From: Paragordius varius
Taxonomy: Eukaryota > Animalia > Nematomorpha
DNA: 64,000 bases
Assembly: GCA_964247055.1 (NCBI GenBank)
Contig: OZ176053.1
Location: 4,092,001-4,156,000, forward strand
Reading direction: 5' to 3'
Part shown: piece by piece, positions 15,050 through 50,385 of the stretch
How the letters are laid out: the number at the start of each line of letters is the position of its first letter
How positions within the stretch are numbered: the stretch's first letter is position 1
Notes under the pieces: model-generated
What the model saw: the letters and a program-made list of their open reading frames with translations, nothing else
Database searches by the model: none
What the model was told of the DNA's origin: nothing
Program-made: the position numbers and the translations under genes

Positions 15050-16639
15050 TTATAACAATATTCTTACAACAAAAAAGGTGAATTGTAAAAAATATATAAA
15101 ACTTACTTTATTTTGAGAATTTATTTTTGGATTTTGACTCATGTCCGGTTTCATAATTTTTGAATTTTGGTAATGTGATTGCGCAGATTCATTTGCCTTT
15201 TTTTGATGCGGTTTCGTTGGTTCTTTGTTGTTTTCTATGGGTTTACCATCAAGACCAACTATTAATTTTGTCGGGTCAAACGCTTTTTTAAACCGTTTTC
15301 GATGGTGATGATGACCATTTTCTATATTTTGATTAGTTGGATCCTTAGGTATGGGATTTATTTTAACAGTGCTAGCACTTGTTTTTAACCATCCATCACT
15401 TTCTGTAAAATATTGCAATTGTTTGATGGGTTCTACCTGGACATATGCATTTGTTTGATTTTCGTTTTCAAAAGTACTTGTTGGAATTGTTTTTATTGTT
15501 ACAGCATTTTGGTGTGGAGATAAAAAGGGTTTATTTTGTTTTTTCCCTACGGTAGTTGTATTTAACCATTCGTCATTATTGTCGTCCTGTCCCATATCGA
15601 TTGTAACACTTTCGTTTATTATATTTGGTTTTAGCTGTATTTTATTTTTTAAACTCTCAATCATGACCAATAAATCATTACTAGTAAGACTTGAATCTTG
15701 AGGACAATATTGCGTTAAATTTATGGAAAGAATTGCACAACTAATATTTGATTCAGATATTGATACGGAACGATTATTCCATTCTTTAGCAAACCTTTTT
15801 TGAAACTCTGATAATTCTTTAGAATCATAATCTATGAGGTAATGCAAGGAGGAAGGTGTTTGGCCAGTTTGTGTCAAACTTACAACATTATCCAAATTTT
15901 CTACTAAACATACATTACCCTTGGCTGATGATATGATTTGCTGATATTTGGAATACTGTTCGTTTGAAATAAAGGCAAAGCACACGCCTTTAAAAAGCTT
16001 AGTTCTTTGTGAATGGGGATTCAGATTAAAATTTAGTAAAGATGTATCTACTATGGAGGGTAAATATGGATCAGCAAAAAATAATGGCTTTGTAAGAGGG
16101 TTTTTATTAACCTTGAAGTCAAGAAATATTTGTAACAAATCTTTGAAAAATATAGAAGTAACGATTGGTTTTGCTGTGACTAAAGCAGACAGCACCTTGG
16201 GTGTTATTTTTAAATGTGGCATTACCAAAAAGTCACAAAACTTACCCTCAAAAAACCAATTATCATGGATAGTGATACCCAATTTGTTGCAATTAGATTT
16301 TAATTCGTTGATTTCCTTACTACAAGTTAAAAGTGATGTTGTAACATGGAAACAAAATTGAGTAAATTTAAATGTTGCATTTTGAATACCGAATGTAATA
16401 AGATCATTTGATTTTAATTGATACTGAGATATTTTCTCTCCCCTGATATAGGTGCCATATTTGGATGAATCCTTAATAAAATATTTGCCGTTTTCCAAGA
16501 AAATTTTTGCATGTACTCTCGATATTGACGCATCTTTTTCGATTACAATATCGTTATCTTTTCGTCCAATTTCATATTCATACACCTGAGGAATCAAGGG
16601 ATATTTAGTTTTTAAACTTATATTTTCCGCCAACCACAT
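15050..16639 (-). CDS. NBN: Nibrin / NBS1 (FHA, tandem BRCT, MRE11-binding motif)
   Basis: First ATG at 16639 gives MWLAE...EYEIGRK (the ORF-track start at 16651 is TTG). FHA ISRVHA; BRCT1 LVMPHLKITPKVLSALVTAKPIV; BRCT2 RTKLFKGVCFAF; RKRFKK resembles NFKKFKK. A strong donor GTAAGT at 15106 means the true 3' end is probably a further exon (candidate 14724-14783). Confidence 0.9.
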   Translation of the reverse strand: MWLAENISLKTKYPLIPQVYEYEIGRKDNDIVIEKDASISRVHAKIFLENGKYFIKDSSKYGTYIRGEKISQYQLKSNDLITFGIQNATFKFTQFCFHVTTSLLTCSKEINELKSNCNKLGITIHDNWFFEGKFCDFLVMPHLKITPKVLSALVTAKPIVTSIFFKDLLQIFLDFKVNKNPLTKPLFFADPYLPSIVDTSLLNFNLNPHSQRTKLFKGVCFAFISNEQYSKYQQIISSAKGNVCLVENLDNVVSLTQTGQTPSSLHYLIDYDSKELSEFQKRFAKEWNNRSVSISESNISCAILSINLTQYCPQDSSLTSNDLLVMIESLKNKIQLKPNIINESVTIDMGQDDNNDEWLNTTTVGKKQNKPFLSPHQNAVTIKTIPTSTFENENQTNAYVQVEPIKQLQYFTESDGWLKTSASTVKINPIPKDPTNQNIENGHHHHRKRFKKAFDPTKLIVGLDGKPIENNKEPTKPHQKKANESAQSHYQNSKIMKPDMSQNPKINSQNKVSFIYFLQFTFFVVRILL

Positions 16640-16689
16640 GGAAAAAGTCAATATTCACACAACCATATGTCAAAAGCGCTTCTTTCAAA
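16640..16689. promoter_or_regulatory. 50-bp interval between divergent start codons (putative bidirectional promoter region)
   Basis: NBS1 ATG (minus, 16639) and NuMA-like ATG (plus, 16690). Confidence 0.6.
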
Positions 16690-19600
16690 ATGAAAAATTT
16701 AAACTGCCTATTGGAATGGGTTAATACATTAAATGATAAAAATTATGAATCGCTTAAGAGTTTTTTCCATGATTTTGATTCAATGTCAGATATAATGAAT
16801 ATTGACATTAAAAGCTTTTCCGATATATTGAATGATTTGGAAAGTATTTTCAAAATTATTTTTAGATTTGTTACAAAATAAAATTTTCGATATAGATCCC
16901 ATTGAACTAAATGAAACCCATTATGCAAAGGTATTTTTTGTTAACATTTTAGCTGTTAATGATACTGACATATAGTTTGTTGAATGGTTCAAATAAAAAA
17001 TTCTACATGGAATCCACTTATAAATTAAACCGAATAAATCAAAGTATAATGGCTCATATGTTGCAAGATACATTTAAATATATAAGAAGTTGTCAATTAC
17101 AAAGTATGAAATATTTGAAATTCATTAGATATTGATAAAATTTTAGAATTTGATTATAAAGTCAAAACACCTCCACGTAAATCTCGTAAAAGTGGTCACA
17201 GATACTCTAAAAACAAAAATAATTTAAAATTTTATGGTAAACCACCATCAATAAAAATCACAACAACTTTTGATGATCAATCGGGAGCATTGATTGAAAT
17301 GAAAGTAATTTTATATTGTTTTATATATATAATTTATAATATATTAAAAATTTTCCCTAAATATTGAATTAATTTTAAACGGTGTTTTTGGATTATTTAA
17401 ATAAAATTTGATATTCTACTTTTTAGGCACAAATAAAAAACTTATTGGCCAAATTAAAGTCATTGCAACAACAATACGACAATGTGGACGCAGAAAAAAT
17501 GGATTTGGCCTATAAGATCGAAGATTTGACCAATATTATTTGCAATCTGAGTATATATTGTATTTCGGTTAATTTATAAGTATAATTTATAAAATATCAA
17601 AAAATATTTTAGTTTTTATTACAATATTGGTTTCATTTTGATGTTCATTTTATATAGTAAAATAAAATGATAAATCATAAACGTGAAGACTAATATTTTA
17701 AAATATGTGATTTGCTATTGTAAAAGGTTTAATTCGCTCACCCGAATCTCATATCCTTATTTTGCCCAAAACGATAATAAGTTAGATAAAAAAATTAATA
17801 TTTAACGTAAAAATATGGATAATTATATTAAAAAAATATTATTTACATTCCTTTTAATTTCAATTTTTTTGGATATAATAAAAACATTTTAGGGGAAGAA
17901 ATCAAAGTCAAGACAAAAGATTTGGCCACGGTCCACGAATTTTATATGGAAAATGTTGAAAATCTACAATCTAACTTAGCCGATCAAAACACTGTAAAAG
18001 AAAAATTAGAGCAACGAATATCCATATTGGAAATGACGGAATCAAATTTAAAGGATAAAATAAAAGACATAAACGCTGAATATCAGAACTCTATCGCAGA
18101 CTACACGAAACAAATCAACGACATTGAACAAAAATATCAAACAGGTATACCATTATTATCAAATCTAAATAATTTGGCTATAATGCGATATTTATTAAGA
18201 AATAAATATAATTTTATATCAAAAGCGAAAATTATTATTTTTGATTTTATCTCTTTATAAGTGTATCATATTGTTATAGTCAAATTAATTATAATCATGC
18301 GAAACGTGGTTGTTATTAATTATGATTATTATATAATAATGAAGTGTTATTATTAGCTATTTCCTTATTTATATAAATATTTTTTAGAAAAATCGGAATA
18401 TAAGATGACTTTAACCAATCTAATCGGCGAATCTGAAAACATGAGATTACAAAACGTAAATTTGACACATGATTTAAACGAACTTGGTGCTATTAAAATA
18501 GATCTTGAATCCCAAATTAATATAATGCGTGCTAATAAGGTAATAATTTTTCTCTTCTTCTATCAATAACAATTTATATAAAAAATGCTAAATATTTAAT
18601 TAATAGGCTCTAAATGAAGACAAACTTCTAGTAAAAGAAAGAGAAAATTGCCAGCTAAATGAACAAATTCAATTGATAACTGATACCAATTTGGTGTTGG
18701 AAAAAGAGCTTCAACATATCCGGCTAAATTGTGATAAAATTAGCCAAACTCTTCATTTGAGAGAGAATGTAATAAAAAACTTGGAAATCGAAATTTCACA
18801 AAGTATTTACGCTTTAAACTTCCTATAATTATATAATTTATAAAGTTTAGAGTTGGGATTAAATATTATTTTTGTGGAATCGAAACCATATGCTTCTGTT
18901 ATCAAAACTTGATAAACCACAAAAAATTGAAACACGGTTCCGATATGTATAAAAGTTTAAGTTTATAACTTTAATTTATTTTTAACCTTAGCTTTATGGA
19001 TTAAAATGTATAAATTTGGTAAAATCACCCCGCCCCTGCCCAAAAAATGTTATATCATATAGTCTTATTGGGTGCTTAAATTACTCGTTTAATATTATTA
19101 TATATGATAAAATATAGATAATCATCTGTTTGGCGCATTCGTTTTTGGCATTTATTTTTCTTGTAGGCCGTTAACTCCCGATTTTTTGTCTTTAAAATTC
19201 ATTTCTTATTCCATCATTTTAAAAAATTTAGGTAACTCAATACATACTAATAGTTCTTTAAATTTGACACTCTATACAGTGGACATCCCTCTTTTAATGA
19301 GCTTTTCTAAAAACAATTAACAACGTCTTATTTTTTAAGTTATAATTGTTCAAACTGGGTATTATGTTAAGCCAAAAATAATCAAATAAATAATTTACCA
19401 TTATTATATATATATATATATATATATATTATCTCAATTGGGTCTATAATACTATTTATTCTAATAAATATTTATGAAATTAGTATTATTTATTTTAAAA
19501 AAAAGGTCGTGATGTATGTTTTATGAAGCAAAATTTATGTAGAATGCCTATTTTATTAATTTTTTAACATATATTTATATAGAGAATGAACAGTTAAATA

Positions 19601-22600
19601 GTAAAACTACAGAATTCATTTCATTGCAAAAAGTGTCTGAAGAAAAGGCAAATCTTTTGCAATCATCTTTGGATGAACAATACTTAATGAAAGAAAAATG
19701 TGTACAGAAAATAAAAATGCTGGAAGTTTCGGAAATAAATTTACAAAATACCGTCGAGAAATTAAAAACTAATCTTTGTGATACCACAACAAATTTAAAC
19801 CAAAAAATTAAAACCCTACAAGATAAACATGATGAAGGTATATTATCCCATTATTATATACTCATTTAATTCTTATAAAAACTGGGGGCGTCCTGCATGA
19901 TATATCTTGATATTTTTTGTTCATATAAAACCATTTATTATAATTATTAAAAAAAATTAATTCTTTGGTTTTTTCTTAGAAAAGTGTCAACGAATAAATT
20001 TATATATACCAACTTTATTAATATAACGATGGATCAAATATCCTTAGTTTATATTACATTAATCTATTTATAATCGAAGTTTTAGAATAAAAATATTTAA
20101 ATTATTTATGTTTATATAACAGAAATAGCAAATTACAATGCCAATATTGTTGACCTAACCCATAAATCTGAAAGTCTTACGTTACAAAATGCAAAATTAA
20201 CGGAGGAAATCTCGGATCTTAAAAACGATAAAGTCAAAAATGAACGTCAGAGAGAGATATTAAAATCTGATAAGGTATGTATAAAACCTAAATAGTTTGT
20301 TTTATCGGGTAATAAGCGAATGATTTTTTTACATTATTTTCCAATAAAAGCGGAAAAAACGAAAAGGTATATTTTAATTATATTTATAATCTAATTTTTA
20401 TATACAATAAGTTAATTAACGTAAGATAATCTAATTTTTTTATAGGATTTAGCGGAAAATAAATTGTTGCAAAAAGAGAAAGAAAATTTAGAAGCCATTG
20501 AAAACATTGTGTCTTTAACGAATGCCAAATCACTGTTAACAAAAAGATTGGATGAATTAACATTTAAGTATGAGGGGATAGAGAAGTCTTTATTTACAAA
20601 GGAGGCAATACTGCAAAAGTTGGAAAATCAACTTCAACAAAGTTATACCTTTATTTTGTTAATCACAAATTTTACACATATTATTTCCATATTAATTATT
20701 TTATTTTCTTAAATCTTTTTGCAAAGGTTTGTAAATAATATGGTTTTGATTTAAACAATATTTTACTATAAAACACGAAAAATCCATTCTTTCAATCTAT
20801 TTTCTTTAAAAGGCTAGTACCATCACTATATAATATATATATATATATATATAACATAAACCCAATACATATATTAATATTATCGGGTTATTATTTCTGT
20901 ATTAATTTACAAAATATTTTTAGTATATTAATATTAATATATTTCAAAGATAGTCATTCTTTAACCAATGATATTATTAATAATACAGTTTATAGTCTTT
21001 TTTCCTTTTTTTATCAAATGTTAAGATCTTAAACCTATCACCCTTTGAAAAACCCTCAAGACTCGCCTGCCCAGGGTTGGCAATGGTGATAAAAAAACTG
21101 CGTAGTTTTTAATATGTAGTTATAAAAGAAACGTAGTTTATTATTTTAAACAAGGCCAATATTTTATGCAAATATTGATTCAAAATTTAACGAAAAAAAA
21201 TTTATTTAATTCTCGCGATACATTTAGATGAGGAACAATTACAAGAAAAAATGGAAGAACTGTCTAACCTCACTGACCTTTATGGACAAAAAGTTAAAGC
21301 ATTAGAAGAGGCCTATGATTTACAAGACACACTTAAAGAGCAATTTGAACAAAAAATTAGTGGGTTGGAAACGTCTAAAATGCATTTGGACCAAAAATTA
21401 AAGGAAATGACTGATCAGTATGTTCAATCTAGAGCTCAATATTCGGAAAAATTGGAATCAATTCAAGATCAACTTAGAATAGGTAAAAAATATATTATAT
21501 ATTGCCATTATTTTAAACATGTTTTCCCTATAAAATTTTATGTAATTAGTAATAATTATATAAATTTATGATATATAGTTAAAAAATAAATGATTAACTA
21601 ATAATTTATGCGAAAATTCAGTGATAGATTTAGCGGTTTAACTCAACCAAATTATATTATTGGTTGGTGATTAACTTGTTATAGTTATTTGTTAATTGAT
21701 GAAAATTAGAATGGCAGAACTCACATTAAAACTAAACAACTTTTAAAAGTATTTTCTACAATATTACAAAAAGTACATAAATAGCAGAAATAATGATATA
21801 ATATTATTATATAGGCAATAATTCAGCAAAAATTATATAAATTTATTATGATATTTCGATTACTACAAGTAATCTTTGTCAAACGTAAAAATAAAATTAT
21901 ATAAACTATTATATAATTTTTGCTGAATTATTGCTATAATAATACAATCACACTTCAGCGTAAACAATATCCAATGATATAATAATTAAAACATATTTTT
22001 TCAAGATAATTATTCACAAATAATCCGTTTATTTCTAAATTATGTGACTTTATATCAAAAGATAAATGTAATTAAAAAAAACATTATATTTATTTTTAAT
22101 CACAGCGTCCTAATTTGTACAAATAATTATATTTATATATCAAAAATTAATATATTTTTTATCAATGCATTTAGACGAGGAACAATTACAACAAAAAACA
22201 AATGAACTGTGTAAACTTAATGATCTTTATGAAGAAAAGATAAAAGCGTTAGAAAAATCCAATCTTTTTCAAGCGACTACTCTAAAAGAGCAATATGAAC
22301 AAAATATTTGTGCGTTGGAAAGGTCCATAACGCATTTAGAAGAAAAACTGAGAGAAATGACCGCTGAATATGATACATCTACAACGCATTATATTGAAAA
22401 AATTAAGTTGATGCAAGATCAACACCAAATAGGTAATGGGAATATAATTATATTGTGTTGTACTTAGGGTTGTGCTGACCAAGTCATGACCTGGTCAATT
22501 GACCGGGTCATGACCAGGTCAGTGACTATTTATTTTTTGACCATGGTCATTTTAGCTGTTTTTTGAAAAATTGCTGGTAATTTTTTTGGAAAAATAGCAA

Positions 22601-25600
22601 GTTATTTTATATTATAAAAAAATATATAAATATTTAAATTTGCTTATTTAAAAATTTAAAATGTTAAACATGCATCCTTAAAACATTAGCATTTTAAGCA
22701 TATCCAGTTATTTCGAAAAAGAAAATAATCCAACTTTTTATTAAATATTCAATTATCCCATGTATGTGAACTAAAATGAAAAAATTTTATAATTGGATAT
22801 TTCAATGATCAAAGAAAGTGTAAAAGAAACAGGAAAAATTTTATTTGAAATATCCAGTATTAAAAGCGAGGTATTTGAAAATTTAGAAGTAATTTCATAA
22901 TCCAATATCGCATGGTATTTACTTAGATAAAGTGGTCATGACCATCATCTGACCGGACTTTTTTGAAAAAGCAGTCAAATGCACAACCCTAGTTGTACTA
23001 CTATTTTAACATTTTTTTGTTTTGAATGATAGGTATTTATAATGGGCTTTGGTTGATTTAAGTGTTTTTTATAATATATCTGGTAATAATAGTTTAATAA
23101 CCAATATTTTACATAATTTAACAGTTCGAATTGAGAAGTGATTGCCTAAATTAATTAATAACTTATGTGAAATTTGTGTAATTAAACGTTTGTTGTGATT
23201 AAAATACCTGATTCTCGAAATATATTGTTCTGTTGGTATGATTAATGTAGTTTAAAATATTTATATAATAATAATATGATAAAAATTATTTTTAGAAGAT
23301 ATAATATTTTGATTTTTAAATTGAATATTATTTAAATTATAAAAAATATTAAAGGATTAATTATTTTCTATAACCCGTATATTTTTAATTCGGTGTTTCT
23401 ATGTAATTTGATAAATGTTAAAAAACGTATTATTCTATCAAAAACAAAAGCCGTACCATATTAGTGCGATTATCCTTCCGAAATTTAAATTGTTAGATAT
23501 AGGTCACTATTAAAAATAATTTTTTTCCTTCCCAATATATTTAGATGAGGAACAATTACAACGAAAAACAACTGAATTGTCTAACCTTACTGAACTTTAT
23601 GAAGAAAAAGTTAGAGCATTAGAAGAAGCTAATCTTTTACAAGCGACGCTCAAGGGGCAATTTGAACAAAAAATCAGTTCTCTGGAAACGTCTAAAACGA
23701 ATTTAGATGAAAACATTAAAGAGATGACCACTAAGCATAAAATATCCACAGTGCAATATACGGAAAAACTTACATTAATTCAAGATCAACATAAAAAAGG
23801 TAAGGGGATACTAATTTGAATACCTTTTCAAAGTATTCTTTTTTAATTGATTTGAAATGTCTTATAAATGGGCTTGGGTTAATTTGTCCTATTTATTTTT
23901 AGTTAATTAGCAGTGAAGATTGAATCCATATCTATATCCTACAAAAAATGTGGAATGAAAACTAAGGCTGTGATAACTACGATTTAATGATGCACAATGA
24001 TTTGTTATTTCTAACAAAAATGAAAAAAATGATAAAAAACCATTTTTATTGGCTATAAATTGATTATAATAAAAATTATTATCGATACCCCTATTAATAA
24101 CAGAGTAGAACCTGTTTAGAAAGGGATTTGGTTTAAAACATAGTTTTTGGTCGCTGAGTACTTTTAGTATGTTTTAAAACATATCATAAATTTGAGGATA
24201 TTTATTTCTACAAATTTCAAATTATTTCCAAACTTCAATAAGAGTTTAGTGGATATATAAATCGTTATTTGATTTATTTTAATATATTTTTTGACAAATA
24301 AATCATTTTAACTTTAAAGGCAATTTCTTTAAACTAATATTAATCCTTTTAATAATGTCTATATCTAATAAATTTGATATTTCTTAATTGTATGTCATAT
24401 TATAACTGTGTAATTGAATAAAAAATGCCTCCTATTACCACAAACAAGAGTCTATCCATCATATTTTACCCAAAACAGTTTTAACTTTATATATATTTTG
24501 ATAAATTAAAATTGTGATTCTTTAATTTAGATGAGGAACAATTACAACAAAAATCTAATGAATTGTCTAGCCTTACTGAACTTTATAAAGAAAAAGTTAT
24601 AGCATTAGAAAAAGCTAATGATTTACAAGCGACGCTTCAAGAACAATATGAACAAAAAATCAGTGCGTTGGAAAAGTCCAAATTGAATTTGGATGATAAA
24701 ATAAAAGAAATTTCCGCGCAGTATAATACATCTATAGCGCAATATTCGGAAAAACTTAAATTGATGCAAGATCAACATGAAATAGGTAAAAAGATATGCA
24801 ATTCAATATACCTCACACCTTTTTTATCTTTATGATAAATAAATAATAAATGGGACCGGGTTATTTGAGTCATTTTTCTACAATCTATATGGTAGATAAA
24901 TGGAAAGGTGATAGCTAATATGTTAATTTATTTATTAATACATTTGAATATTTTTTTTACAAAAAAGTAAAATAAATTAACTTTTAGAACATTGATATAA
25001 TACAAACAAAACGTAGAAAACTAAGTACAATTTTTTTTAAAGAGACAACCATAAAACGTTTATTTTATATATAAACTATTATGCTATTTTATATATATGA
25101 TTGACTGTGTTATCAATTTGAGTCTCTATTTTATAATTTGCAATTTGAAATAATTATTTTCTTTAAACAAATCAAGTTTAAAAAAGACAGCGGTCCTTTG
25201 AAAATATTTGTCTTTATTTACTATTGTTTTCAATTTTTACTGTAAATCTATAATAGGCTATTGCTGCCTAAGCTGAAAATTATGGTAACTTAATTATCAT
25301 AAAAGGAATATAAATTTATTCTGTTATAAAAAAGGGTCTAATTTTGTCGAAATACCCTTCCAAAATTTTAATTTAATGCAATCAATTTTAGATGAGGCCC
25401 GATTACAACAAGAGACAAATAAATTGTCAAAACTTACCGAACTTTATGAGGAAAAGGCTAAAGCATTAGAAAACTCCAATGATTTACAAGCAACTCTTAA
25501 GGAACAATTTGAGCAAAAAATTAGTGCGTTGGAAACGTCTAAAACGAATATTGAAGAAAAATTAAAGGAAATGGCCGCTCAATTAGAAATATCTACAGCG

Positions 25601-28600
25601 CATTATAACGAAAAAATTAAATCGATACAAGATCTATACGAAATAGGTTAGGGGGATTTTTATGTATTCTATTATTATTATTACTTATGGCTTAGCAATA
25701 TTATTTTTAGTTTAAATTCCTACGAAGTTTGGTGCAATTAATTTATTATTCCAATTTATTTTTTCGAAAAGATTTGAAAATGAGTAAATTTCATTTTCAC
25801 CTCTAATTGTATAATTTAACTTACCCCATAAAAGCAATGATTTACACCTTTAAAAAATTATTTTAGAAGATCATTGAGATTTGAATACTTTATTATATAA
25901 AGTACACATTTTAATCGTAAAATATACAGAGCTTACAAAGTATGACAAGACTGTAATCAATCTAACAGCGGAATCGGAAAGTTATAAGGTTCAAAATATG
26001 GATTTGATTAGCCAAATTGATCAATTGAAAACAGAAACGTCTGAAAATTATACACAAATAAATGCGCTAAACGCAAATAAAGTTAATATTTATATTTTAA
26101 CTAATCTTGATTTGTTAAATTATAAGTATTAGACATACTTATTTTGTCCGATAATGCAATCAATTAATTAAATCGCCAATGATTATATATCTAAAGCAGG
26201 GGCGTCCAACACAAATGGCTTCACGGGCCGGATTCTAAAAATATATATGTAGTTTTAATTTGATTTTATCCCCAAGATTGTAAAAAATAGGAACATAATA
26301 AAACTATTTATTTTAACAATTTTTGCTATTGCATTGCCAAAATTTGGAAAAATATATTCAAATATGTATACAAAAATATCAATCTAACTTATATTTTGGA
26401 ATGTGTTGGTATTATTAAAAATTTTTACGGGCACAAAAATAGAGGGCCGACCCCTAATTTAAAGGTTTTCATTAAATATAAGTTGTTATGATTGTGGACC
26501 GGTTGAAATTCTAACCTCAAAACTTACTTTTGCCGTATGATATATTTTAACTACGTTAATAATCTAAACTCTTTTTCTCAGGTTATGGTTGAAGAGAAAC
26601 TTAAAGTAATACAACAAGAAAATGCTCTACTTATTACACAAATTGAATCTTTAACCCATTCCAAACATGGTTTAGAAAAATATTTAGAGGAAAAAACATC
26701 AACAATTGATAAGCTTACGGAAACAATTAAAGTAAAAGACCTGGTTATATCAAAAATGGCAGTGGAACCAGTGCAAGGTTTATGTAATATAAATTATATA
26801 GATTTACGATCCCACAAAAAATATCCCGGTCTTTTAAACTAAATATTGTTTAAATTTCATTTGTTAAAAACCTATTTAATTACTTATGGTATGTTAGAAT
26901 ATAAATAAAACAAAAATAGTCTCTAAAATGGGAAGACAAAAGCGTCTGATTGCCAAAGAGAATTAGCTGTAATAAAATGCTCAAAAATGTTATAAAAAAC
27001 AATAAAGAAAAATTTTTATAAGTTTATACTGATAGTTACTTATGGATCTTTGGAGAGATAACAGTTTTATTTCATAATATGACCATTACATTAACAAAAA
27101 AAACGATTATGCTTTACCGCAAAATATTTGACGTCAGGCATAATTATATATTTTATATTGTAAAAAGTGTTAAACATGTCACCCAAAAAACTTGAACGAT
27201 AAAATATAAGTTCCAAGTTAAAAACTAGTGGAATTGGTCAAGTTTGTGTTTGAGATTTTTACCAATGCAATATTTATAATTTGTAGTTGTCTAAAGCCGA
27301 GGCTAGAAACAAAGGACAAATAAATTTTCTCTAAAAAGTATTTATTATATCAATAACAAGGATTTAATGATAATATCAAAAGCGAGCCCTATAAGAATTA
27401 TTTATACTTTAATTGGATATTTAACAGCATGGAAGTAAAAATTGGTAATTAAAACCATTTATTGGTAATTTTCGAAAACTGACTAACTTTAAACCGTTAA
27501 AAATGTTAACACAATCATCCTGTAAGCTCTCTGATGTTTCTCACTTTAAAAAATAGCCTATTGTAATGCGACCTTAAAAAAATCTATTTTATTAAAATCT
27601 TTCAATCAATTATTTCGATAGTTTAACAATACAATATTTTATGACATTTGATTAATTCGATCTTTACATAAGATTACGTAGAAATATCTATTATTTATAA
27701 ATAGGCAACAATGAAAAACTTATTAAACCAATTTTAACCGATAATCTTATAGCCAATGAAATTCATAAAGCTCAGAACAACTTACCGAAATCTCAAACAC
27801 GAATAAAAACACCAAGTATGGAAAAGATGGTTTCCCCTACCGATATGTTGGCCTACAAAAATTTTATAAACGTTAGTTATCCCACGCTTCAATATGGAAT
27901 AACTAAAACAACACAAAACTCTGATGACTTAATCGCATCAAACATTAATTCAATAATCATTAATGATAAGCCAAATACTCAATCTACGTTAGAAAGACCT
28001 AGTAGAAAAACGGCACTTAATTTTTTCATAGAAAATACGCCTGATCGCTTTCATAAACCAAAAAATAGGGCTGTTACAAAAGAAGCTGGTAAAAACAACC
28101 ATATTACATCTTCGCAAACCATGTCACAGCCTAACAATTTAAATGTGTACCAAAATGGGTAAGACCGTAAAATTTAATTAAAAATTGCTCTATCTTTTTT
28201 AATAGTTCGATATGGCTTAAACTGCGTAGCCATTTTAGGTGATCTAATTAAGAGTTGCTTTTACAAATTTAAAATATACCTAAAGCAAATGCATTGCAAC
28301 AACCTTAATTTAATTTTTATATATAATTTAGTCATGCTTCATTGATGTCTGACGATCATAGCTATGAGAATGTATCCAAATATAAAACATTTAGTAAGGA
28401 TTAATTTGACAATTTTGCCTCATTTATTACGAATATTAATTTATTTTATATATTTCTCTCTGTTCGCAGACCTACCATTCAATCCAAACGGTGTACAGTG
28501 GAAGCCTATGTCGGATGTTTTGGATTTTCCAGAGATTTCGTGTAATTAATATATACTTAAAATAATGTTACGTTACGATCAAAAATTAATCGACCCTACC

Positions 28601-29507
28601 ACCTTTGAATGCAGTCATTTGTGGTCAAATTATCTAATTTGATACATTTAATATAAGTTCAGTCATTAAATTATATTAATTGTAATACTTGATATATATG
28701 TTTTAAAGGTTTTGACTGTTTATTTTTATAAGCAGTTAAAGTCGGAATCAATTCGGGTAGACAGAACCCTACTTTAAAAATTTATGAATATCACATGCTT
28801 TACGAAAAAAAATAGTTTATAGCGCCAAATCAACCCTAAATCAATCTGAAACGACGACAGGAAATGTATTTTCTCGAAAAGAATCCAACAAACCCAGCGA
28901 TATGCTTGCCGAAATCAATGGAAAAGATCGGATAGCTGAATTGAACAGAAGAAATACCTTATTAGCTCCACATCTAAAATCTACCTATCCATTAGAAATA
29001 CAATGTATTGAGGATTCTTCAATTTTTGAGGTGCCGTTCTTATTTTATTTGATATTTGAAAAATTTGTTTATATAAAAATAAAAGGGTTAAGTGTTGTTT
29101 TGAGTTTTACCCCTTTAAAAAAATTTTTAATGTCATCATTACATATTATTCTTTCTTTAGGTATAAAAACAATTTATAATGATTATATTATGATGTGCCA
29201 TATATAATATTTTTTAATTATTATAATCAATAAATTAATACCTACTATGTTTAATTATTTTAAGGATGAACAAAAAGCAAACCAAATGGAATCGTTGAAT
29301 GGAAACTTGGCAACTCCTCAAAACGCTAGAAAAATGGATAAAAGGTATATAATTATTATGTTACATAATTTTTATCCTATTTATTCTAATAGGCAGCATC
29401 CCAATTTACGGTATTTGACCCCTTCCAAATTCTTACCCTCTATCCGAAAAACATTTCACAAAAACTTTAAGGGTTTCAACATGAGAACCCCATCTAAAAA
29501 ATTATAA
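16690..29507 (+). CDS. NUMA1: NuMA/Mud-like spindle protein: N-terminal HOOK/CH-like domain, long coiled coil, NuMA C-terminal motif (24 exons, about 1495 aa)
   Basis: N-terminus LLEWVNTL...AKLLMILTY resembles NuMA LLSWVNSL...LAKMTMLLLY. C-terminal RIAELNRRNTLLAPHLKSTYPLE resembles NuMA RIAELQQRNRVCPPHLKTCYPLE. CDK-type TP motifs in the tail. My GT-AG exon chain sums to 4488 nt with all phases compatible. Confidence 0.75.
21815..21934. repeat. Short MITE-like inverted repeat in a NuMA intron
   Basis: 26-bp perfect arms GCAATAATTCAGCAAAAATTATATAA (21815-21840) and its reverse complement (21909-21934). Confidence 0.75.
22465..22991. mobile_element. hAT-type MITE, 527 bp
   Basis: Perfect 11-bp TIR TAGGGTTGTGC/GCACAACCCTA. 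Perfect 8-bp TSD GTTGTACT (22457-22464, 22992-22999). Subterminal GGTCATGACC repeats. Confidence 0.92.
26197..26456. mobile_element. hAT (Buster/Charlie-like) MITE, 260 bp
   Basis: Starts CAGGGGCGTCCAAC and ends GGCCGACCCCTA. The 8-bp flanks ATCTAAAG / ATTTAAAG match at 7 of 8 positions and have a central TA. Confidence 0.75.
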
Positions 29508-29631: not shown

Positions 29632-32171
29632 TCAATCATACTCTGATCCGATGACTACGCTCATTTCATTTCCAATTACAAGAGTTTTGTGGTACCATTT
29701 ATTTGTGTCTAAAACAACTAAAAAACATAATATTTGGTTAATTTTTAAGGCCTATTCAATATAAAATAGAGTTAAAGTTAGACATTATTTATTAAATATT
29801 ATTAACTTGTCTCTCCAGGATTCACAGTTACCTCCAAACTCTTACATGTTAAATAACATTCAGGAGCTGGTTGTAAATACCAAGTTTTGGATCCTTTTAT
29901 CTGAGCTTGCCATGACGGCTTCCCTACATGATCAATCTATAAAATTAAATTCAAAAATATATTTTACTTAAAAACTGATCTATTTGAGATATAAAATGAA
30001 AAAAGAAACATGCATATGTGCTCCATATCCTGGACTTCCCATAAAAATCCAATCCGTTTTACTCGATTCTGACGTATTGGGTAAAAAGTATGGTCTGCCA
30101 TAATACGATCTCAGAATATTTGCTGCTTCCGGATCACAATTACTCCTGATTGAAAAATGAATGATAAATTTGAAAAAATATCTAAATATTATGAAGCAGA
30201 CTGTTAAAAACAAACGGGTTATATTTTATTAGGGAGGTTTATTTAGTAAAGCAATTTGAATAATAAGATTTCTTTATGAACTTTAGCTTCTAATTATGAG
30301 ATATGAACGTTTATTTAGTTTTAATTTAATATTTAACCATGTCAATTTATAAATAATTTTTAAAACCTTAAAATATATATAAAAGGTATTTTAATTATTA
30401 GGGAGTTAAAAAATAATTTAATCAATATTTCTTACCAACCAATGTACCATGGTTTGGAACCATCTTTTAACAGGGCCCTTTCGGGCGACATATCAAAAAC
30501 TTGGGATAGGCTTTTAAACTCCGTTTTGTACGGAAAGAATTGACAATTTTTACTGGATTTACTCAAAACGGGACTTCCTTCTCGATAAATATTTCGGAAA
30601 AAGTTCAAATCAAAATTATCGCCAGCCGTCCAATCTTTATGTTTTGTTAAAAATAATGATTAATATTTATCGCTTAATGTTTATAAGAAAATTGAGAAGG
30701 TGATGTATAGTATAAGAAAAAATGGATATGAAAAATCAAAATATATATATTTAATTAATGTAAGGAAATGTTTATTTTTTAATATTATAAAAAGATAAAT
30801 TTTATGTAACATAAGGTAACAATCTTTAACCCTAAAGACTATAAAAAAAATTATTTGTTAAACATATAATTGTTAGGTGATATAAAATTAAAAAGAAAAA
30901 AACTTATTTATAAAAGTATTACGGAATCTTTTTAAATTAGATAAATAAATTAACATTTTCAAGTATACTAATAATAATAGAGTTGATCATTGTGCCCATA
31001 TTAAATTGGTGGCGATTGATAATAAATTGTCACCAATAACGGTTATTTCAATATTTTATTTAAAAATATTTCAAATCATAAACGGCCACAAGGGTTACAT
31101 TTAGAGATATATAACCTCTTTGTCAATTCGTTCACCTGCCGGATTTTATGATATAAAAAGAATAGCAGTAATCCTTACACCAGGGGTGTCCAACACATGG
31201 ACCGCGGGCCGCATTCAGCCATCTGAGACATTATTTGCGGCCAACGAAAATTATGGATTTTATAATGACATGCTTACAAATCTTGGTAAAATTTAATTGG
31301 GAAGAACTAAAAACAATTGTTATAATGTGTTTTCATTTATACAACATTGATATTCGAAACGCGGTCCACGGGCCGCATGACTAAAAGCGCTTTTTATGAC
31401 TCTGAATTATTAATTAAATTTTTGATGAACTTATTTGAAGTATAAGTTTATGCAAATGTGTCAAACAATAAAATTTTTATCGGTATTATGGTATTTGGTA
31501 CAAGAAAAATATTTTTTTGGCCTTTTAATTTTTTTGGCGAGTCCACTATTATCTTTTACTTTCAAATTTTGGTGAATTTCATAAAAAAACACAATTTATA
31601 TTTGACATAAATTAGGATGAACCAATATTATAATCAAAATTCTGAGGTGATAGAAATTTTCGGCATCGTTAATCATATAGATAAAGTTTTTTTATAATTT
31701 ATAAAAGCGTACCGTTTCCTTCATTCCTAATAATAGGATGAAGTTCGCTTCAACAAAATTTTTCTAAAAATTAAATTTTTGAAAAAGTATGTTTTTTTAA
31801 ATTTTTTAAATGTTAAAATTTAGCATATATTTAAAAATTTTATCGCGCGATCCCGGCATATTAATGTTTATTTAAAAAACTAACCCATTTTAGAAAAGCA
31901 AAAAATTTTGGACTTTCGGTGCCTACATCCAAAAATTAAAATATTTTAAAAATATTATTTTGCTTTTAGGTATATATTATATATTTTAGTAATATTTTTT
32001 GGAATGAAGCATTTAGCTTTCAACAAAAAAATTTTATTACAAAAAATGAGTTCAAATTTAGCCATTTTCTGATATGGAGAACTTATCACAAAAAGGTAAA
32101 TAACTTTCTTATCACTCGTAAGGGCCAAAACCAAAAGCACCATGATAATCCTGATACATTTTCCTATCAGA

Positions 32172-32207
<36 letters not shown>

Positions 32208-33245
32208 TTCAACAGGTTATTTTTGGAAACAGTGTGCGGGTCAACTATATCATTTTAGTGACGCCAGAAACGTATCCGTTATATTTTTGGTAAAAAAGTC
32301 TTAATTTTTCTAAACTATCACATACCATCCAATGATTTCTTACATGGATATTAAATAAAAATAAATTACGTTTAGTGAAACCCGTTTTAATGCATTCAAA
32401 AAGCTATAATCTATAAAATTGCAAAAAATCGAGCGAGAAAAACATCCCTTAAATCAATTAATTTATTTAAAACTTTATTATGGAACTTTTTTGGACAAAA
32501 AATTTAATTTTATGACATTATGAATTTCTAAATAACAATAAGTTGACAGAAGTTGTGTTTGTACATTCACCGGGTGGTATATGTTAATAATGTAACAAAT
32601 CTATGAGTTTTTTTGAAAAATGGTTGAAAGTAAATTATGGCACTGTGCTAAATCATCAATGTTTTTTAGTTACTATTATTTAGAAAATAAACAAATAATA
32701 TTTTTGTACCGATATAATATTAAATAAATATTGTTAAAATTTCCTATCAAAAAGAAAAAAAATTTCTTTCACCATAGTGAAACGGTTTGTATGCAAATAT
32801 TTTCATAAGCGCAAAAATTGTTCTACAATTATTGCAATCGAATTATATATCAAACTATCAATTTATATGCGCATCGCGTATATAGTCCATCAATTCATAA
32901 AATAAACAAACATTTACTTTTCTGTGCATCTATTATAATTATCGGTTGCAATGAATAGGCATATTTTGTTTCAAATTCTTCCGGGCTTAAGTTTCGTAAT
33001 TTGGGAACGTTTGTAATGTATTTACATTTATTACAATCGACCGGGGGTCTAAACCAGTCTGCAAAATAACTAGGGGCCTCCACGCTACAATATTCTTCTT
33101 CGAGAATATATCCTTTCCAATACTCCACGTATATGCGTGCTAATAATTCCAAAGTCAATAATTTTAAGCTTTTATTTGAGTTTAAGATAAAAAGACCCGA
33201 TTGATATGCTAAAAAGCTGAACAATATTATAAGCGTATTTGACAT
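29632..33245 (-). CDS. Uncharacterised JmjC/cupin-superfamily Fe(II)/2OG oxygenase with N-terminal hydrophobic segment (5 exons, 292 aa)
   Basis: Exons 33245-32918, 30634-30436, 30145-30010, 29936-29807 and 29717-29632 sum to 879 nt in frame. Motifs RPPVDCNKC, CQFFPYKTEF, PWYIGWSNCD, DWIFMG, HMHIDH (HxD), SWQAQIKGSKTW and WYHKT (distal His). Confidence 0.8.
31181..31385 (+). mobile_element. hAT (Buster/Charlie-like) terminal fragment
   Basis: CAGGGGTGTCCAACACATGGACCGCGGGCCGCAT start, with the subterminal motif GCGGTCCACGGGCCGCAT repeated near 31360; right end not found. Confidence 0.55.
31660..32180 (-). repeat. Dispersed repeat, reverse copy of about 2650-3170, inside the JmjC gene's first intron
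   Basis: Reverse-complement matches such as CTTCAACAAAATTTT, AAATTTAGCATATATTTAAAA, ACTCGTAAGG..AAAACCAAAAGCAC.ATGA and TTTTCCTATCAG. Boundaries approximate. Confidence 0.65.
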
Positions 33246-34186
33246 TAATAAAGAAAACTTAGAAGCAAAATTATTAAATATTGGTAAATCACAATCCCAA
33301 AATCCTTGATTAAACGCTGTGCCTGGATTTAAGAATTAAAAAGATCTTATCTCTAATTAGATAGAGATTAAATTGTTATAATAATGATAGATTACTAATA
33401 TTGACTGTAAATATGAAATTGTTATTTGTTAATAATACTGTAAAATTGCAAATTTGTCAAAATTTATAGCTAGTTAATAGGAGAATAATTGCACACTACC
33501 AGAGTTTATTTTATACAAAAGTGGATCTATGATCTCACTTACTAAGCTAGTTGAGAAGGATCGAAAAATCATTTAATGGGATATTTTATTTTGTCATCAG
33601 CCCCTTCTTAGTAAATCTATAAAATCATCCAAGGTTAATTAGCAAAAATTGGTGCATGTTAAACGCTTAAATTATGAGGAACATCTCCTCATTCGAACAG
33701 TAATTATCCGTTAGATCTCGCTGCCTTGTGCCGACCTTTTTTGGCAGTGTATTGACCTAAAAAGCTGTACAAATTAAAATTTTCATTTATCAAATTAAAA
33801 AATTAATTTAGTGTTTTGTATATGACCGCATACGTCATTTGTTTAGCTGTCAGAAAAATTTGTTGCCTCATAAATATTGTGTGGATACTAATGGTATATT
33901 TTTTTTATTTAGTAGACGTATTTAAAAATATTAGGTTTTTAATCAAAGTAAAATAAGAATAGGGCCAGTATATATAACGTTTATTAAAATATTCGGAAAT
34001 AAGCCCTCTTTCTGTCAGAATATCAAAATAGTTTAAAATAATTATTAAACCTTAAACCTGGTTGATGTAAAGCGAATGTATTTTTTTGTCAAAAAAAGAT
34101 ATTTTCCTTTTTTTATAAAATTATTGAAGATATACCAAATTTCTGTCTGATAAAGTCATATGTTTATTATAAAAAGATCTGTTTAA

Positions 34187-34400
34187 CACTTTGATTGGAA
34201 TTGGAGTAGTGACCCCAGACTATACTTAAATTAATATTATTAAAAACTATTGAAAGCGACCGTTCCATTTTATACTTATGCTTCATCCCAATAAAAATTA
34301 TATAAATAAGCCAAATTATCCAAATATAGTATTGAAAATTAAAGCTCCATATCATACTACTTGAGGGCCATTTTTATTTTAGAATATTTTTGCAAAATAT
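34187..34400 (+). mobile_element. Left-end fragment of the piggyBac-like TTAA family
   Basis: TTAA|CACTTTGATT...GACCCCAGACTA, aligning to 2293-2500 and 40657-40870. Confidence 0.55.
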
Positions 34401-34593
34401 CGTGCCTTAGTGTTTCTAGCTAAAATTAATACTTCATGAATTTTTCACTTTATCCATGATAATATATTGGGGTAGTTTTTATCCCAGGGCTCAATCTTGC
34501 AAATAAACTATTACTAAGTTAAAACTAACTGATTAAACATTGCCCCGTATTGGATAAAAAAGCTTATATTTTTACAGATTGGAACTTCTAGAC

Positions 34594-34879
34594 CAGGAAT
34601 GCCCAACACAAATGGCTTACCGGGCCGCATTTTTGGTTCAAAAAAACAGCGGGCCACATTTGGAAAATATATGGACATAAACAAATATTTTATTAGATTT
34701 TAAATGTAAGAAGACTGTAAAAAAATATTTATTTTATTTTTGCTAGAGTTCATTGCCACTCGGGAAGATTTATCAGAAAATTGGTTTAAGATATTTTTCC
34801 TATATTTTGTAAAATGTTGCATTTGAAATTTTGCTAGGAGCGCATAAATTTTTTGGAGGCCCACGTGTTGGACACTATG
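34594..34879. mobile_element. Older hAT (Buster-like) MITE
   Basis: Left CAGGAATGCCCAACACAAATGGC, right GTGTTGGACACTATG. Left flank TTCTAGAC fits an nTCTAGAn target; the right flank matches 5 of 8 positions. Confidence 0.55.
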
Positions 34880-35752
34880 TTGCAGAGTTCGGAAGAGCCC
34901 CAACGATTGAAATAAACAACTGATTTTAAAATCAATGTATAACATTTTGCTGGTAAAATGCAACCTAAAAGTTCTTAAGTAAATTATTTATGTTGTCTAA
35001 CTATATATATATATACATTTATTTGTCTGTAATATTAGCAACGGCCAAAAAGTTTGTGATGGGGTTTTTTTTAATTTTATATATTTAAAAAAAATTATGT
35101 ATAATGCCCGTAAAAGGCCAAAGAAAGCATATTTAAAATTCGGCTCAATATAAATACTTTTTAGATATTCGAATTTCGATATAAAACTACCCAAACGGTC
35201 ATGGAATGTTAAAGTTGAAAAAAAATTATTTATATTTTAGCAAAAGTATTAATATACTTATTCGCTTATTAAAATGGGCCGTTTAAAAATTTAATCATTA
35301 AATTGCTTGACCACACCAGTAAAATATTAATCTGCTCAAATTGTATGATATATATTGATAAAATAATATAGCTATTACATATTTTGCAATTTAAAAACGT
35401 ACCAATAAAATTTATACTTAAAATATACCCTTCATATCTTCAAGTTGGTACCTTAATAGACGAGCTTGAATGAAAATATATATCTTGTAAAGTAGTTAGG
35501 TAAAAGAATTCACAACATTTTAATAAATTTTAATTAAGGAGAAAGCGAGCGTTAATTAGGACGAGGAAAATATTAAGAAGGGGTTTAAAATCATGAAGGG
35601 TGATTATGAATAAGTTAAGTGAATGGATGTTGACATCGAACTAACGTTTTTGCATTTCAAATGATTATGCATAAAATTTATGTATTTTTCAGTTTTTAGT
35701 ATATAGAACCTTTTATCTAGATCTAGGCCTATTTTATTGTATTTTATTTAAT

Positions 35753-37717
35753 TTAACATAATACAAAAGAGGATAATATGAGAAGCCATAACAAAAATAT
35801 ATTATTTATTGTAACAATGGGCGCTGTATCATTACTACGCATTTCTTGGTACAAAAATTTATGCAATTGTTGTTGCAAGTCAGATTTTCGTGTTAAAGCA
35901 TTACAGGTCATCGATCCATTGTCGGCCATTATTTTCCCCATTTTTTCACAACTATCTGTGCAACAAACATCATTGACTGGTGTACATTGATATCCCTTTT
36001 TCAATTTACAGCCCTGCACACTTAAATTCAGGAGACTATTTATAATATAATTTGTTGATTTGTTCACGTATTTAAAATCGATTTTTGATGGTTCACAACA
36101 ATGATCCCAATACTCACAATAAGGCTCTGGGCCACAATCACATTCTTCCCCGGCGTCAATTACTCCGTTTCCACACATTGGACCGATCAGACAATCTCCC
36201 TTATTACGCAACACTTCTGTTATCTGTTTTTTGCTACATGGTGAAAACAACCAATTATTTCTTTTACCACCGGTTGAGGCTTCGCTAAACATAAGAAAAG
36301 TACCATGTCCTGCATAAGGATCACCACTCAGCTCCATATCTCCAAGGCAATCTGTCACATTATCATGGAAGCTCCCAAGGGCATGACCTAACTCATGCGT
36401 CACCGTTAACAGAGAAATGTGTTGAGGTACGCGTTTTCCCTTATGCACTATAGTAAAGATTCCAGTATTGAAACTATAGGCTTTGCCATCTTCTTCGAGG
36501 AAACCTCTTGCTTGGCATATGCCGCCCGCTCTCCCATTCATATCCGGGTCCGCAATCCATGTTAAACCTAAAATTCCTTCATTAAGTGTACGGCATGAAA
36601 AGGCCAAGGCTAAACAGTAATCAGACCAATCATATTCGGAAAAAGCGTTGAGATAAACGCTTGCATTCGTTATGTTATTGTTAAGTTTATAATTAACTGC
36701 TTTTGCGTCTTCAAACAGCGTTACGTTCGCCACCATAAATCCAACATTATCTGCAATGCCATCCCCGTCAAAATCGACGGTCCGAAATATACTGTTAGCT
36801 GCAAGGATGTGAAATATCATTTCATCGATTGGATCTTTTCCTTGCATTTTCATACACTTAACATACTTATGATCGGCAACCAAATGGACGTGACAACTTT
36901 TACTATAAAAACTATTTTTTAGGGCTTGGTTAATTAACTTAAGTGTATGCAACATTTCGGTACGATTAAAATTTTTGGTGTACGATTGCATCCGATCCAT
37001 GTGCTGATGTAACGTTTTGTGATAATGGATAGAATTTTGAGCTATTTCGTCATTCGGTGTTTTCATGATTAAAGCGGATTGCCGACCTTTCAATGTCACT
37101 GACATTTTTTCTCTCAAATTCCACATTCCTTTCATCGAATCCCCGAAATCACTATCTCGGTATATAATCACACTTATATTACAATCGCCTCTCTTTGGGC
37201 CAGGATTAAATGGTTCCATATGGTAAACAGTGTTATTCACGAAAAACAACCCACTAAATACCGCACCTTGCATATTTAAGATGATTGTGGAATCGGAATT
37301 ATTTATCAATCGACCTGATAAAATATGACCATTTTCTTGGTTGGATTTTAGTCTATTTAGCGAGCCATTTTTATACACATTTACGAAGGCATTTGAACTT
37401 ATAATATGGCTTGCTGTATCATTTAAGTAAAATGCGAATGTTTGGTTGAATGCGTTAATGTTACCATAATACATATACGATTTCGGTAGTTTCGTTTTTA
37501 CCTTATTATCATTAATATATGATGAGGTGCTATTCTTTGGGCAAGATGTAATTATAATGTTTTTCATCCCATCACTCACTTTGACATTTGATTCGGCCAG
37601 TTCATAATATTTTAGAAAATTAGTTATATCTTTGCCATCTTCTGTAGTATCTTGTAAACATAAATTATTAAACGGTATAATTATGAATATTATATGATTG
37701 AGAAAAAGGTTAAGCAT
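35753..37717 (-). CDS. ADAM10: ADAM10/kuzbanian-like zinc metalloprotease, single ORF, truncated disintegrin domain, C-terminal hydrophobic tail (654 aa)
   Basis: Signal-like N-terminus and prodomain. CHVHLVADHKY; DFDGDG; DYCLALAF...GILGLTWIA; zinc motif HELGHALGSFHD; Met-turn FLMF; CGNGVIDAGEECDCG. One-to-one orthology to ADAM10 not established. Confidence 0.85.
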   Translation of the reverse strand: MLNLFLNHIIFIIIPFNNLCLQDTTEDGKDITNFLKYYELAESNVKVSDGMKNIIITSCPKNSTSSYINDNKVKTKLPKSYMYYGNINAFNQTFAFYLNDTASHIISSNAFVNVYKNGSLNRLKSNQENGHILSGRLINNSDSTIILNMQGAVFSGLFFVNNTVYHMEPFNPGPKRGDCNISVIIYRDSDFGDSMKGMWNLREKMSVTLKGRQSALIMKTPNDEIAQNSIHYHKTLHQHMDRMQSYTKNFNRTEMLHTLKLINQALKNSFYSKSCHVHLVADHKYVKCMKMQGKDPIDEMIFHILAANSIFRTVDFDGDGIADNVGFMVANVTLFEDAKAVNYKLNNNITNASVYLNAFSEYDWSDYCLALAFSCRTLNEGILGLTWIADPDMNGRAGGICQARGFLEEDGKAYSFNTGIFTIVHKGKRVPQHISLLTVTHELGHALGSFHDNVTDCLGDMELSGDPYAGHGTFLMFSEASTGGKRNNWLFSPCSKKQITEVLRNKGDCLIGPMCGNGVIDAGEECDCGPEPYCEYWDHCCEPSKIDFKYVNKSTNYIINSLLNLSVQGCKLKKGYQCTPVNDVCCTDSCEKMGKIMADNGSMTCNALTRKSDLQQQLHKFLYQEMRSNDTAPIVTINNIFLLWLLILSSFVLC

Positions 37718-50157: not shown

Positions 50158-50385
50158 GTAATAAATATAAAACATATTTGATTGTTATAAAGGTTTTTCA
50201 ATATAATGGATTATCAAAACCCGTTGTTAAATGTTAATCCAAATATTGCAAAACTGTGAAAATCTTTAACTGTAATAAATATAAACCCTATTTGATTGTT
50301 GTGAAAGTTTTTTATTTTTAATGGAATCTAAAAAGAACTCGCCAAACGTTAATCCAAATATAGCGAAACTTCAAAAATCTTTAAC
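50158..50385 (+). repeat. Diverged tandem duplication of about 114 bp covering the KCTD upstream region and start; first copy encodes a 17-aa uORF
   Basis: 50158-50271 vs 50272-50385. uORF 50206-50259 MDYQNPLLNVNPNIAKL* parallels the gene start MESKKNSPNVNPNIAKLQ. Confidence 0.8.

Follow-up and report, generated by a model that had tools for sequence, protein, structure and literature searches.

A putative NuMA-like gene of the nematomorph Paragordius varius with a coiled-coil rod built from tandemly duplicated exons

The sequence analysed here (the window) is a stretch of 64,000 nucleotides from the nematomorph Paragordius varius (assembly GCA_964247055.1, contig OZ176053.1, positions 4,092,001 to 4,156,000 of the forward strand); all positions below are those of the window. 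It is very AT-rich (G+C ∼25%), and at ∼17–27 kb its plus strand carries a series of short open stretches, with introns in between, that form part of a putative NuMA-like gene. The 13 exons encoding the coiled-coil rod of the product were located from the open frames and AG/GT sites alone, independently of an initial annotation of the same DNA. They lie at 17893–26777, all with GT-AG boundaries, and fall into three classes that follow one another in the order ABC, ABC, AAAAA-BC. The A exons measure 252, 255 or 258 nt and are of phase 1-1; the B exons are always 152 nt long (phase 1-0) and the C exons always 196 nt (phase 0-1). When joined, the 13 exons make 2829 nt with no stop codon in frame, the other two frames containing 82 and 117. 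The initial annotation had described this same layout, with these sizes and phases and with a fivefold exon A in the third module; its coordinates matched exactly those found independently, and the five exons of the array (A3–A7) were recovered, as a single clade (see below). The full gene model comprises 22 GT-AG exons on the plus strand (16690–29507; Table 1) and predicts a protein of 1451 residues, with a head of ∼180 residues, a rod that spans residues 183–1166 (984 residues) and a basic tail of 285 residues. The spliced protein was joined for the frame checks, the periodicity analysis and the neutral-drift simulation described below, while family and structure searches were performed with single exons.

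Since all the rod exons have a coiled-coil composition in common, their similarity had to be judged against a cross-class control. Smith-Waterman scores set against those of shuffled sequences gave z values of 8.4–15.5 in every same-class pair tested, as against a mean of 0.53 and a maximum of 3.9 in the 51 cross-class pairs. Within each class the proteins aligned with no gaps other than the one extra codon of A4. Exons A3–A7 are 73–82% identical to one another in DNA and 54–64% in protein; A1 and A2 are only 25–36% identical, whether they are compared with one another or with the array exons. In a maximum-likelihood tree A3–A7 formed a clade with 95/95 support, the internal order of which was left open. 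The DNA similarity between A units stops ∼40–100 nt beyond the exons, the remaining intron being no longer alignable. Seven A-like matches were found in the whole 110.5-Mb assembly, all of them at the locus of this gene, and a search of the window's introns for hidden decayed copies of A, B or C revealed none. An assembly artefact was considered and ruled out, the copies differing by 18–27% and each having its own introns.

Judged by these comparisons, exons of the same class are true paralogues. The z scores, the identities and the A3–A7 clade together lend good support to a history in which the ABC module was triplicated long ago and A was amplified later, inside the third module. The first step would have been an ancient tandem triplication of a three-exon module, A-B-C, of 200–201 residues (∼30 nm of coiled coil). 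In the second, exon A alone would have been amplified to five copies in the third module, every copy adding 85 residues or ∼12.6 nm. Since the triplication B and C have undergone no indels, and A varies by one codon either way. That the lengths of B and C should be exact, and that of A nearly so, despite a protein identity of ∼30%, suggests that length or register is constrained; selection may act on the length of the module itself, beyond its helical character alone.

Pairwise ratios of non-synonymous to synonymous substitution (dN/dS) among A3–A7 were 0.29–0.53, with dS ranging from 0.34 to 0.75 (about 0.56). In a simulation of neutral drift that started from the majority consensus of the array, and in which each copy received its observed number of changes under the local intron base composition, a single copy remained free of stop codons in 3–7% of trials; for all five copies jointly the expected frequency was ∼1.4 × 10–7. 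Together with the dN/dS values, these odds indicate that all five A copies have been kept by selection, and the view that purifying selection holds them open, and hence that they are coding, is well supported. The exon phylogeny and the dN/dS estimate had both been proposed in the initial annotation as checks on its model, for which A exons that are never transcribed would have been damaging: the tree returned A3–A7 as a younger clade, the ratios point to purifying selection, and selection on all five copies removes that objection at the evolutionary level. The dS values also mark the A copies as old, and not as a young unstable array.

The 984 residues of the rod include one proline and seven glycines. 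Its strongest hydrophobic period is 3.54 residues, with 47 times the median power; this value equals 85/24, as expected of A units made of 12 heptads and one further residue. A heptad Viterbi path through all the rod exons, calculated with a simple and crude scoring scheme of our own making, placed about one register skip or stutter within each A exon, and the heptad register was the same at the start of A3, A4, A6 and A7 (four of the five array exons). The proposal that the 85 residues of an A unit amount to 12 heptads plus one was thus borne out by the period and by the skips. With 12 heptads and one skip residue, each A unit would bring the register back to the same position at the start of every exon, and since the register is restored there, added units would leave the coil unbroken. 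AlphaFold2, run on exon A6 alone with an alignment of the seven copies, returned one unbroken helix over residues 2–83 (mean predicted local distance difference test score, 96.7), which supports the prediction that the rod is a continuous helix. A rise of 0.1485 nm per residue would make the whole rod ∼146 nm long, each A unit 12.6 nm and each ABC module ∼30 nm. A long coiled-coil rod of the kind that would dimerise a NuMA-type protein was thus found.

The identity of the gene was assessed from the architecture of its product and from short motifs. The head starts with LLxWVNxL (LLEWVNTL in exon N1), which we take to be Hook- or NuMA-like. The tail has a net charge of +16 and six serine/threonine-proline (S/T-P) sites, the last of them being TP-x-KKL at the extreme end, presumably equivalent to the conserved cyclin-dependent kinase (CDK) site of NuMA. 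Exon T2 carries RIAEL..RN..PHLK..YPLE, which we take to correspond to the core of the NuMA-LIN-5-Mud motif (NLM) of human NuMA; an acidic stretch lies just after it, at the T2/T3 junction. In the human NuMA tail as we assume it to read, the serine of RRxS falls at position 1969 and the threonine of TPKK at position 2055. These two agree with the published positions of the Aurora-A site S1969 and the CDK site T2055, and the matching core falls within the published NLM span, 1922–1957 (PMC8047419). The sequence of the acidic (E-x-E type) LGN/Pins-binding region, which lies beside the NLM, is reported not to be conserved outside vertebrates or arthropods (PMC12505299).

The assignment to the NuMA family has to be weighed against a series of blank searches. 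When Pfam was scanned exon by exon, sub-threshold coiled-coil noise was obtained in the first scan and zero matches in the second; the comparison of both termini with NuMA, Mud and HOOK suggested in the initial annotation thus yielded no family match in these scans. A PDB sequence search with the head and tail exons returned no NuMA chain and nothing relevant, the ESM atlas gave no usable match for exon T2, and nothing came of a word search in which the open stretch around T2 was the query and the exon alone was scored. A text search of papers for the NLM letters as we assume them to read found no paper that prints them. When the seven A exons were compared as a profile with 1.84 billion representatives, nine weak matches came up, which were rejected as compositional. 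The six of these that were looked up proved to be single-member bacterial or unnamed metagenome clusters, and two of the six bore names, one that of a phage tail protein and the other that of a hypothetical protein.

Blank family, structure and homologue searches for every exon searched, and a head motif which is common to the entire Hook-domain superfamily, are what might be expected if the gene encoded a different adaptor with a Hook-type head (Hook, or Girdin/Daple-like) or a lineage-specific coiled-coil protein. In such a case the duplication history would be unchanged and the spindle interpretation would fall. We consider this unlikely, since the tail has both an NLM-like core and a terminal TP-x-KKL resembling the conserved CDK site, the register of the assumed human sequence agrees with published coordinates, and head, rod, basic S/T-P tail and near-end motif follow one another as in the published maps of NuMA and Mud. 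On the basis of its architecture and of the short motifs, the gene is quite probably a NuMA/Mud orthologue. Of the NuMA likeness claimed at the outset, what stood was the layout of head, coil and basic tail; the exon-wise family and structure searches remained blank.

The five A exons of the third module might be included jointly, be used as cassettes or be mutually exclusive. A phase-1 donor joined to any downstream phase-1 acceptor produced a stop codon in no combination, the codon at A-to-A junctions being G/AT (Asp). Every A exon and every ABC block is frame-neutral, as the initial annotation had stated of their skipping, and so are the BC pairs (348 nt). Frame-neutrality is, however, a consequence of the duplication of a symmetric exon, and so provides no evidence of use. 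The acceptors are TTTAG in all five array exons, and the donors are AG/GTAA in A3–A6 and GTTAGG in A7. The introns between the array exons (606–1112 nt) are not sterically limiting, no docking or selector complement common to the array was present among the 96 AT-rich inverted pairs of the inverted-repeat listing, and no conserved element or block was found in the array introns. As no feature forcing a choice of one exon in five was found, joint inclusion is favoured over cassette use and mutual exclusion, and we consider it reasonably probable that A3–A7 are jointly and constitutively included. Two observations weigh against this. Symmetric A exons that are equal in length, phase and sequence are precisely what is sought by programs that predict mutually exclusive or cassette exons, and the donors of A7, B3, C2 and C3 are unusual (GTT). 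A T at donor position +3 is rare in most animals; in this gene it was seen at four of 21 donors, at 20642 (C2), 25647 (A7), 26082 (B3) and 26778 (C3).

If the A exons or the ABC blocks were used as cassettes in variable number, as the initial annotation proposed, cells or individuals would make rods that differ in length by multiples of 85 or 201 residues, and the protein would be a tunable ruler for spindle-pole focusing or cortical pulling. The A, ABC and BC units are all frame-neutral with no stop at the skip junctions, and with the heptad register restored by each A unit the coil would be continuous whatever the number of units. Coil length is also known to matter in NuMA: lengthening or shortening the coil alters how widely the nuclear lattice is spaced, and full cortical pulling force requires the coil, although bipolar spindle assembly does not (PMC8047419). 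That a ruler of this kind is possible is shown by nebulin. However, the splice sites of A3–A6 are strong consensus sites of constitutive appearance, the copies are old and diverged (dS about 0.56), which disfavours unequal crossing-over and makes a stable copy number probable, and frame-neutrality, following as it does from duplication, says nothing of use. Cassette use is therefore rather improbable, and a length-tunable ruler, for which nebulin is the known precedent elsewhere, is unsupported speculation, whether the tuning be by splicing or by copy number. Mutual exclusion, by which each transcript would include one of the five exons and encode a regular (ABC)x3 rod of ∼95 nm in five versions of the third A, fits the properties of A3–A7 (five tandem exons of 255–258 nt, phase 1-1 and 54–64% protein identity), would make for a perfectly regular three-module rod and likewise predicts purifying selection on all five, but is very doubtful given that the exons are multiples of three and their joint inclusion is in frame, that the introns are not sterically limiting and contain neither a common docking or selector complement nor a conserved element, and that substitutions are scattered along the exon and not clustered in a binding patch.

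With joint inclusion, one long rod of ∼146 nm would space a dynein-binding head from a microtubule- and cortex-binding tail, and a spacer function is what we infer for it. The explanation that best accounts for all these data, and which we hold to be slightly better than an even bet, is that of a 22-exon gene, most likely of the NuMA/Mud/LIN-5 family, with a rod produced by two rounds of tandem duplication and with all A exons included. A regulated splice array, with either variable inclusion or a choice of one in five, giving NuMA-like rods that range from ∼95 to 146 nm in increments of 12.6 nm, seems to us a distinctly improbable arrangement. Were it true, the reach of the dynein anchor might be matched to the size of the cell or the spindle (as in large early blastomeres versus small somatic cells), and the protein would be the first dynein adaptor of the coiled-coil type whose length scale is built in and can be chosen by splicing; alternative splicing of the A array would amount to a natural experiment on dynein-anchor length.

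In its layout the predicted protein resembles NuMA, Mud and LIN-5: a putative globular head is followed by a coiled coil of great length, presumably parallel, and by a basic tail rich in candidate phosphorylation sites, which carries a short NLM-like motif close to its end and a terminal TP-x-KK site. Human NuMA differs in its size (2115 residues versus 1451 in the Paragordius gene) and in that its coil is not described as modular, while that of Paragordius is encoded by 13 exons that follow the ABC order strictly. The known isoforms of Mud differ in the tail and not in the rod (PMC12505299). Coil length varies widely among the known members of the family, which fits growth by duplication. This length affects both the spacing of the lattice and the force of cortical pulling (PMC8047419). 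One way in which a rod can be lengthened is illustrated by the Paragordius gene, where exon duplication has supplied entire helical modules and the heptad register is kept.

The closest parallel to this organisation is found in the super-repeats of nebulin and its NEB triplicate region, which are likewise hierarchical, small repeats lying within larger, re-duplicated and frame-neutral exon cassettes. The length of nebulin scales with that of the filament, the number of copies is variable, and alternative splicing affects one of the super-repeat cassettes (PMC7863720, PMC9109913). The initial annotation knew of no description of such an architecture, but the idea of a ruler made of duplicated exon cassettes is not new, nebulin being a described case (PMC7863720, PMC9109913). 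Nebulin is, however, a repeat protein that binds actin and does not form a coiled coil; the exons of its triplicate region are almost identical and are unstable, whereas the Paragordius A copies are old and 73–82% identical; and its ruler function has been measured, while that of the Paragordius rod is only a guess.

Tandem exon duplication is a common route to protein growth and to alternative exons (PMC9741552, PMC2257972, PMC2581893). The exons described here are adjacent, equal in length and phase and significantly similar, as exons duplicated in tandem are defined to be, and the locus is a clean textbook case of the process and not a new mechanism. Clusters of mutually exclusive exons, such as those of myosin heavy chain and SNAP25, are also made up of adjacent, similar exons of the same length and phase that arose by local duplication (PMC2257972, PMC2581893, PMC9741552). 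The known clusters contribute a single exon to each transcript, a choice that is often imposed by the reading frame, by steric limits or by RNA pairing; no such rule was found in the array, for which joint inclusion is the more likely. Yeast Num1 offers a functional parallel, as a cortical dynein anchor in which a repeated centre joins the dynein-binding and the membrane-binding ends; its 13 central tandem repeats of 64 residues have a subtle effect on spindle movement (PMC6297085). It is not homologous to NuMA, however, and its repeats lie within one exon and are not coiled-coil modules.

Table 1. Exons of the putative NuMA-like gene (positions in the window)
Exon	Position	Strand	Remarks
N1	16690–16843	+	ATG at 16690 to GT donor; head, residues 1–51; LLEWVNTL start
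N2	16866–16930	+	65 nt; open frame requires splicing out of 22-nt GT-AG intron 16844–16865
N3	16953–17103	+	151 nt; preceded by 22-nt intron
N4	17129–17304	+	176 nt; preceded by 25-nt intron; basic linker
N5	17427–17550	+	124 nt; coiled coil begins; phase 1 at end; heptad register continuous into A1
A1	17893–18144	+	252 nt; phase 1-1; module 1; z 10–15 versus other A exons
B1	18388–18539	+	152 nt; phase 1-0
C1	18607–18802	+	196 nt; phase 0-1
A2	19583–19837	+	255 nt; module 2
B2	20123–20274	+	152 nt
C2	20446–20641	+	196 nt
A3	21228–21482	+	255 nt; opens fivefold A array of module 3
A4	22175–22432	+	258 nt; one extra codon
A5	23545–23799	+	255 nt
A6	24531–24785	+	255 nt; copy nearest to array consensus
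A7	25392–25646	+	255 nt; donor GTTAGG
B3	25930–26081	+	152 nt
C3	26582–26777	+	196 nt; end of rod
T1	27705–28158	+	454 nt; low-complexity tail with S/T-P sites; Pfam blank
T2	28823–29030	+	208 nt; carries NLM-like core RIAEL..RN..PHLK..YPLE
T3	29265–29344	+	80 nt
T4	29393–29507	+	115 nt including stop; basic end with TP-x-KKL

The head domain is split by three GT-AG micro-introns of 22, 22 and 25 nt (16844–16865, 16931–16952 and 17104–17128), with the pattern A/GTAT...TTAG or ...ATAG; the frame closes unless all of them are removed. The intron between A4 and A5 contains, at 22465–22545, a palindromic element of ∼81 nt that resembles a miniature transposon, with 24-nt arms at 22475–22522. At least 40 copies of it (92–100% identity), on seven contigs of the assembly, were counted among 326 first-look candidates. 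This young insertion helps to explain why the A4–A5 intron is the longest of the array.

Upstream, a gene similar to nibrin/NBS1 occupies 15053–16651 on the minus strand (FHA, 1.8 × 10–18; NIBRIN_BRCT_II, 6.5 × 10–10); a word search detected no homologue of it. The two genes are arranged head-to-head, the open frame of the nibrin-like gene starting 39 bp from the ATG of the NuMA-like gene, and with this spacing the promoter region is probably common to both. Downstream, an open reading frame for an ADAM10-like metalloprotease lies at 35753–37717 (minus strand); its best match was in Gordionus sp. (Nematomorpha; 45% identity, E = 1.5 × 10–173), the next best showing 28% identity. It is followed at 50321–51622 (plus strand) by a BTB_2 (KCTD-like) gene, and the pairing of the ADAM and BTB_2 genes is kept on chromosome OX940784.2 of Gordionus sp., a short stretch of synteny in agreement with the nematomorph origin of the DNA. 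A synteny walk over up to 10 kb around the Gordionus ADAM gene revealed no NuMA-like exon. Between the NuMA-like and the ADAM genes of Paragordius, the spacer at 30000–35000 contains open stretches that encode similar peptides at ∼31172–31381 and ∼34533–34700, which suggests that they are fragments of a dispersed repeat or transposon.

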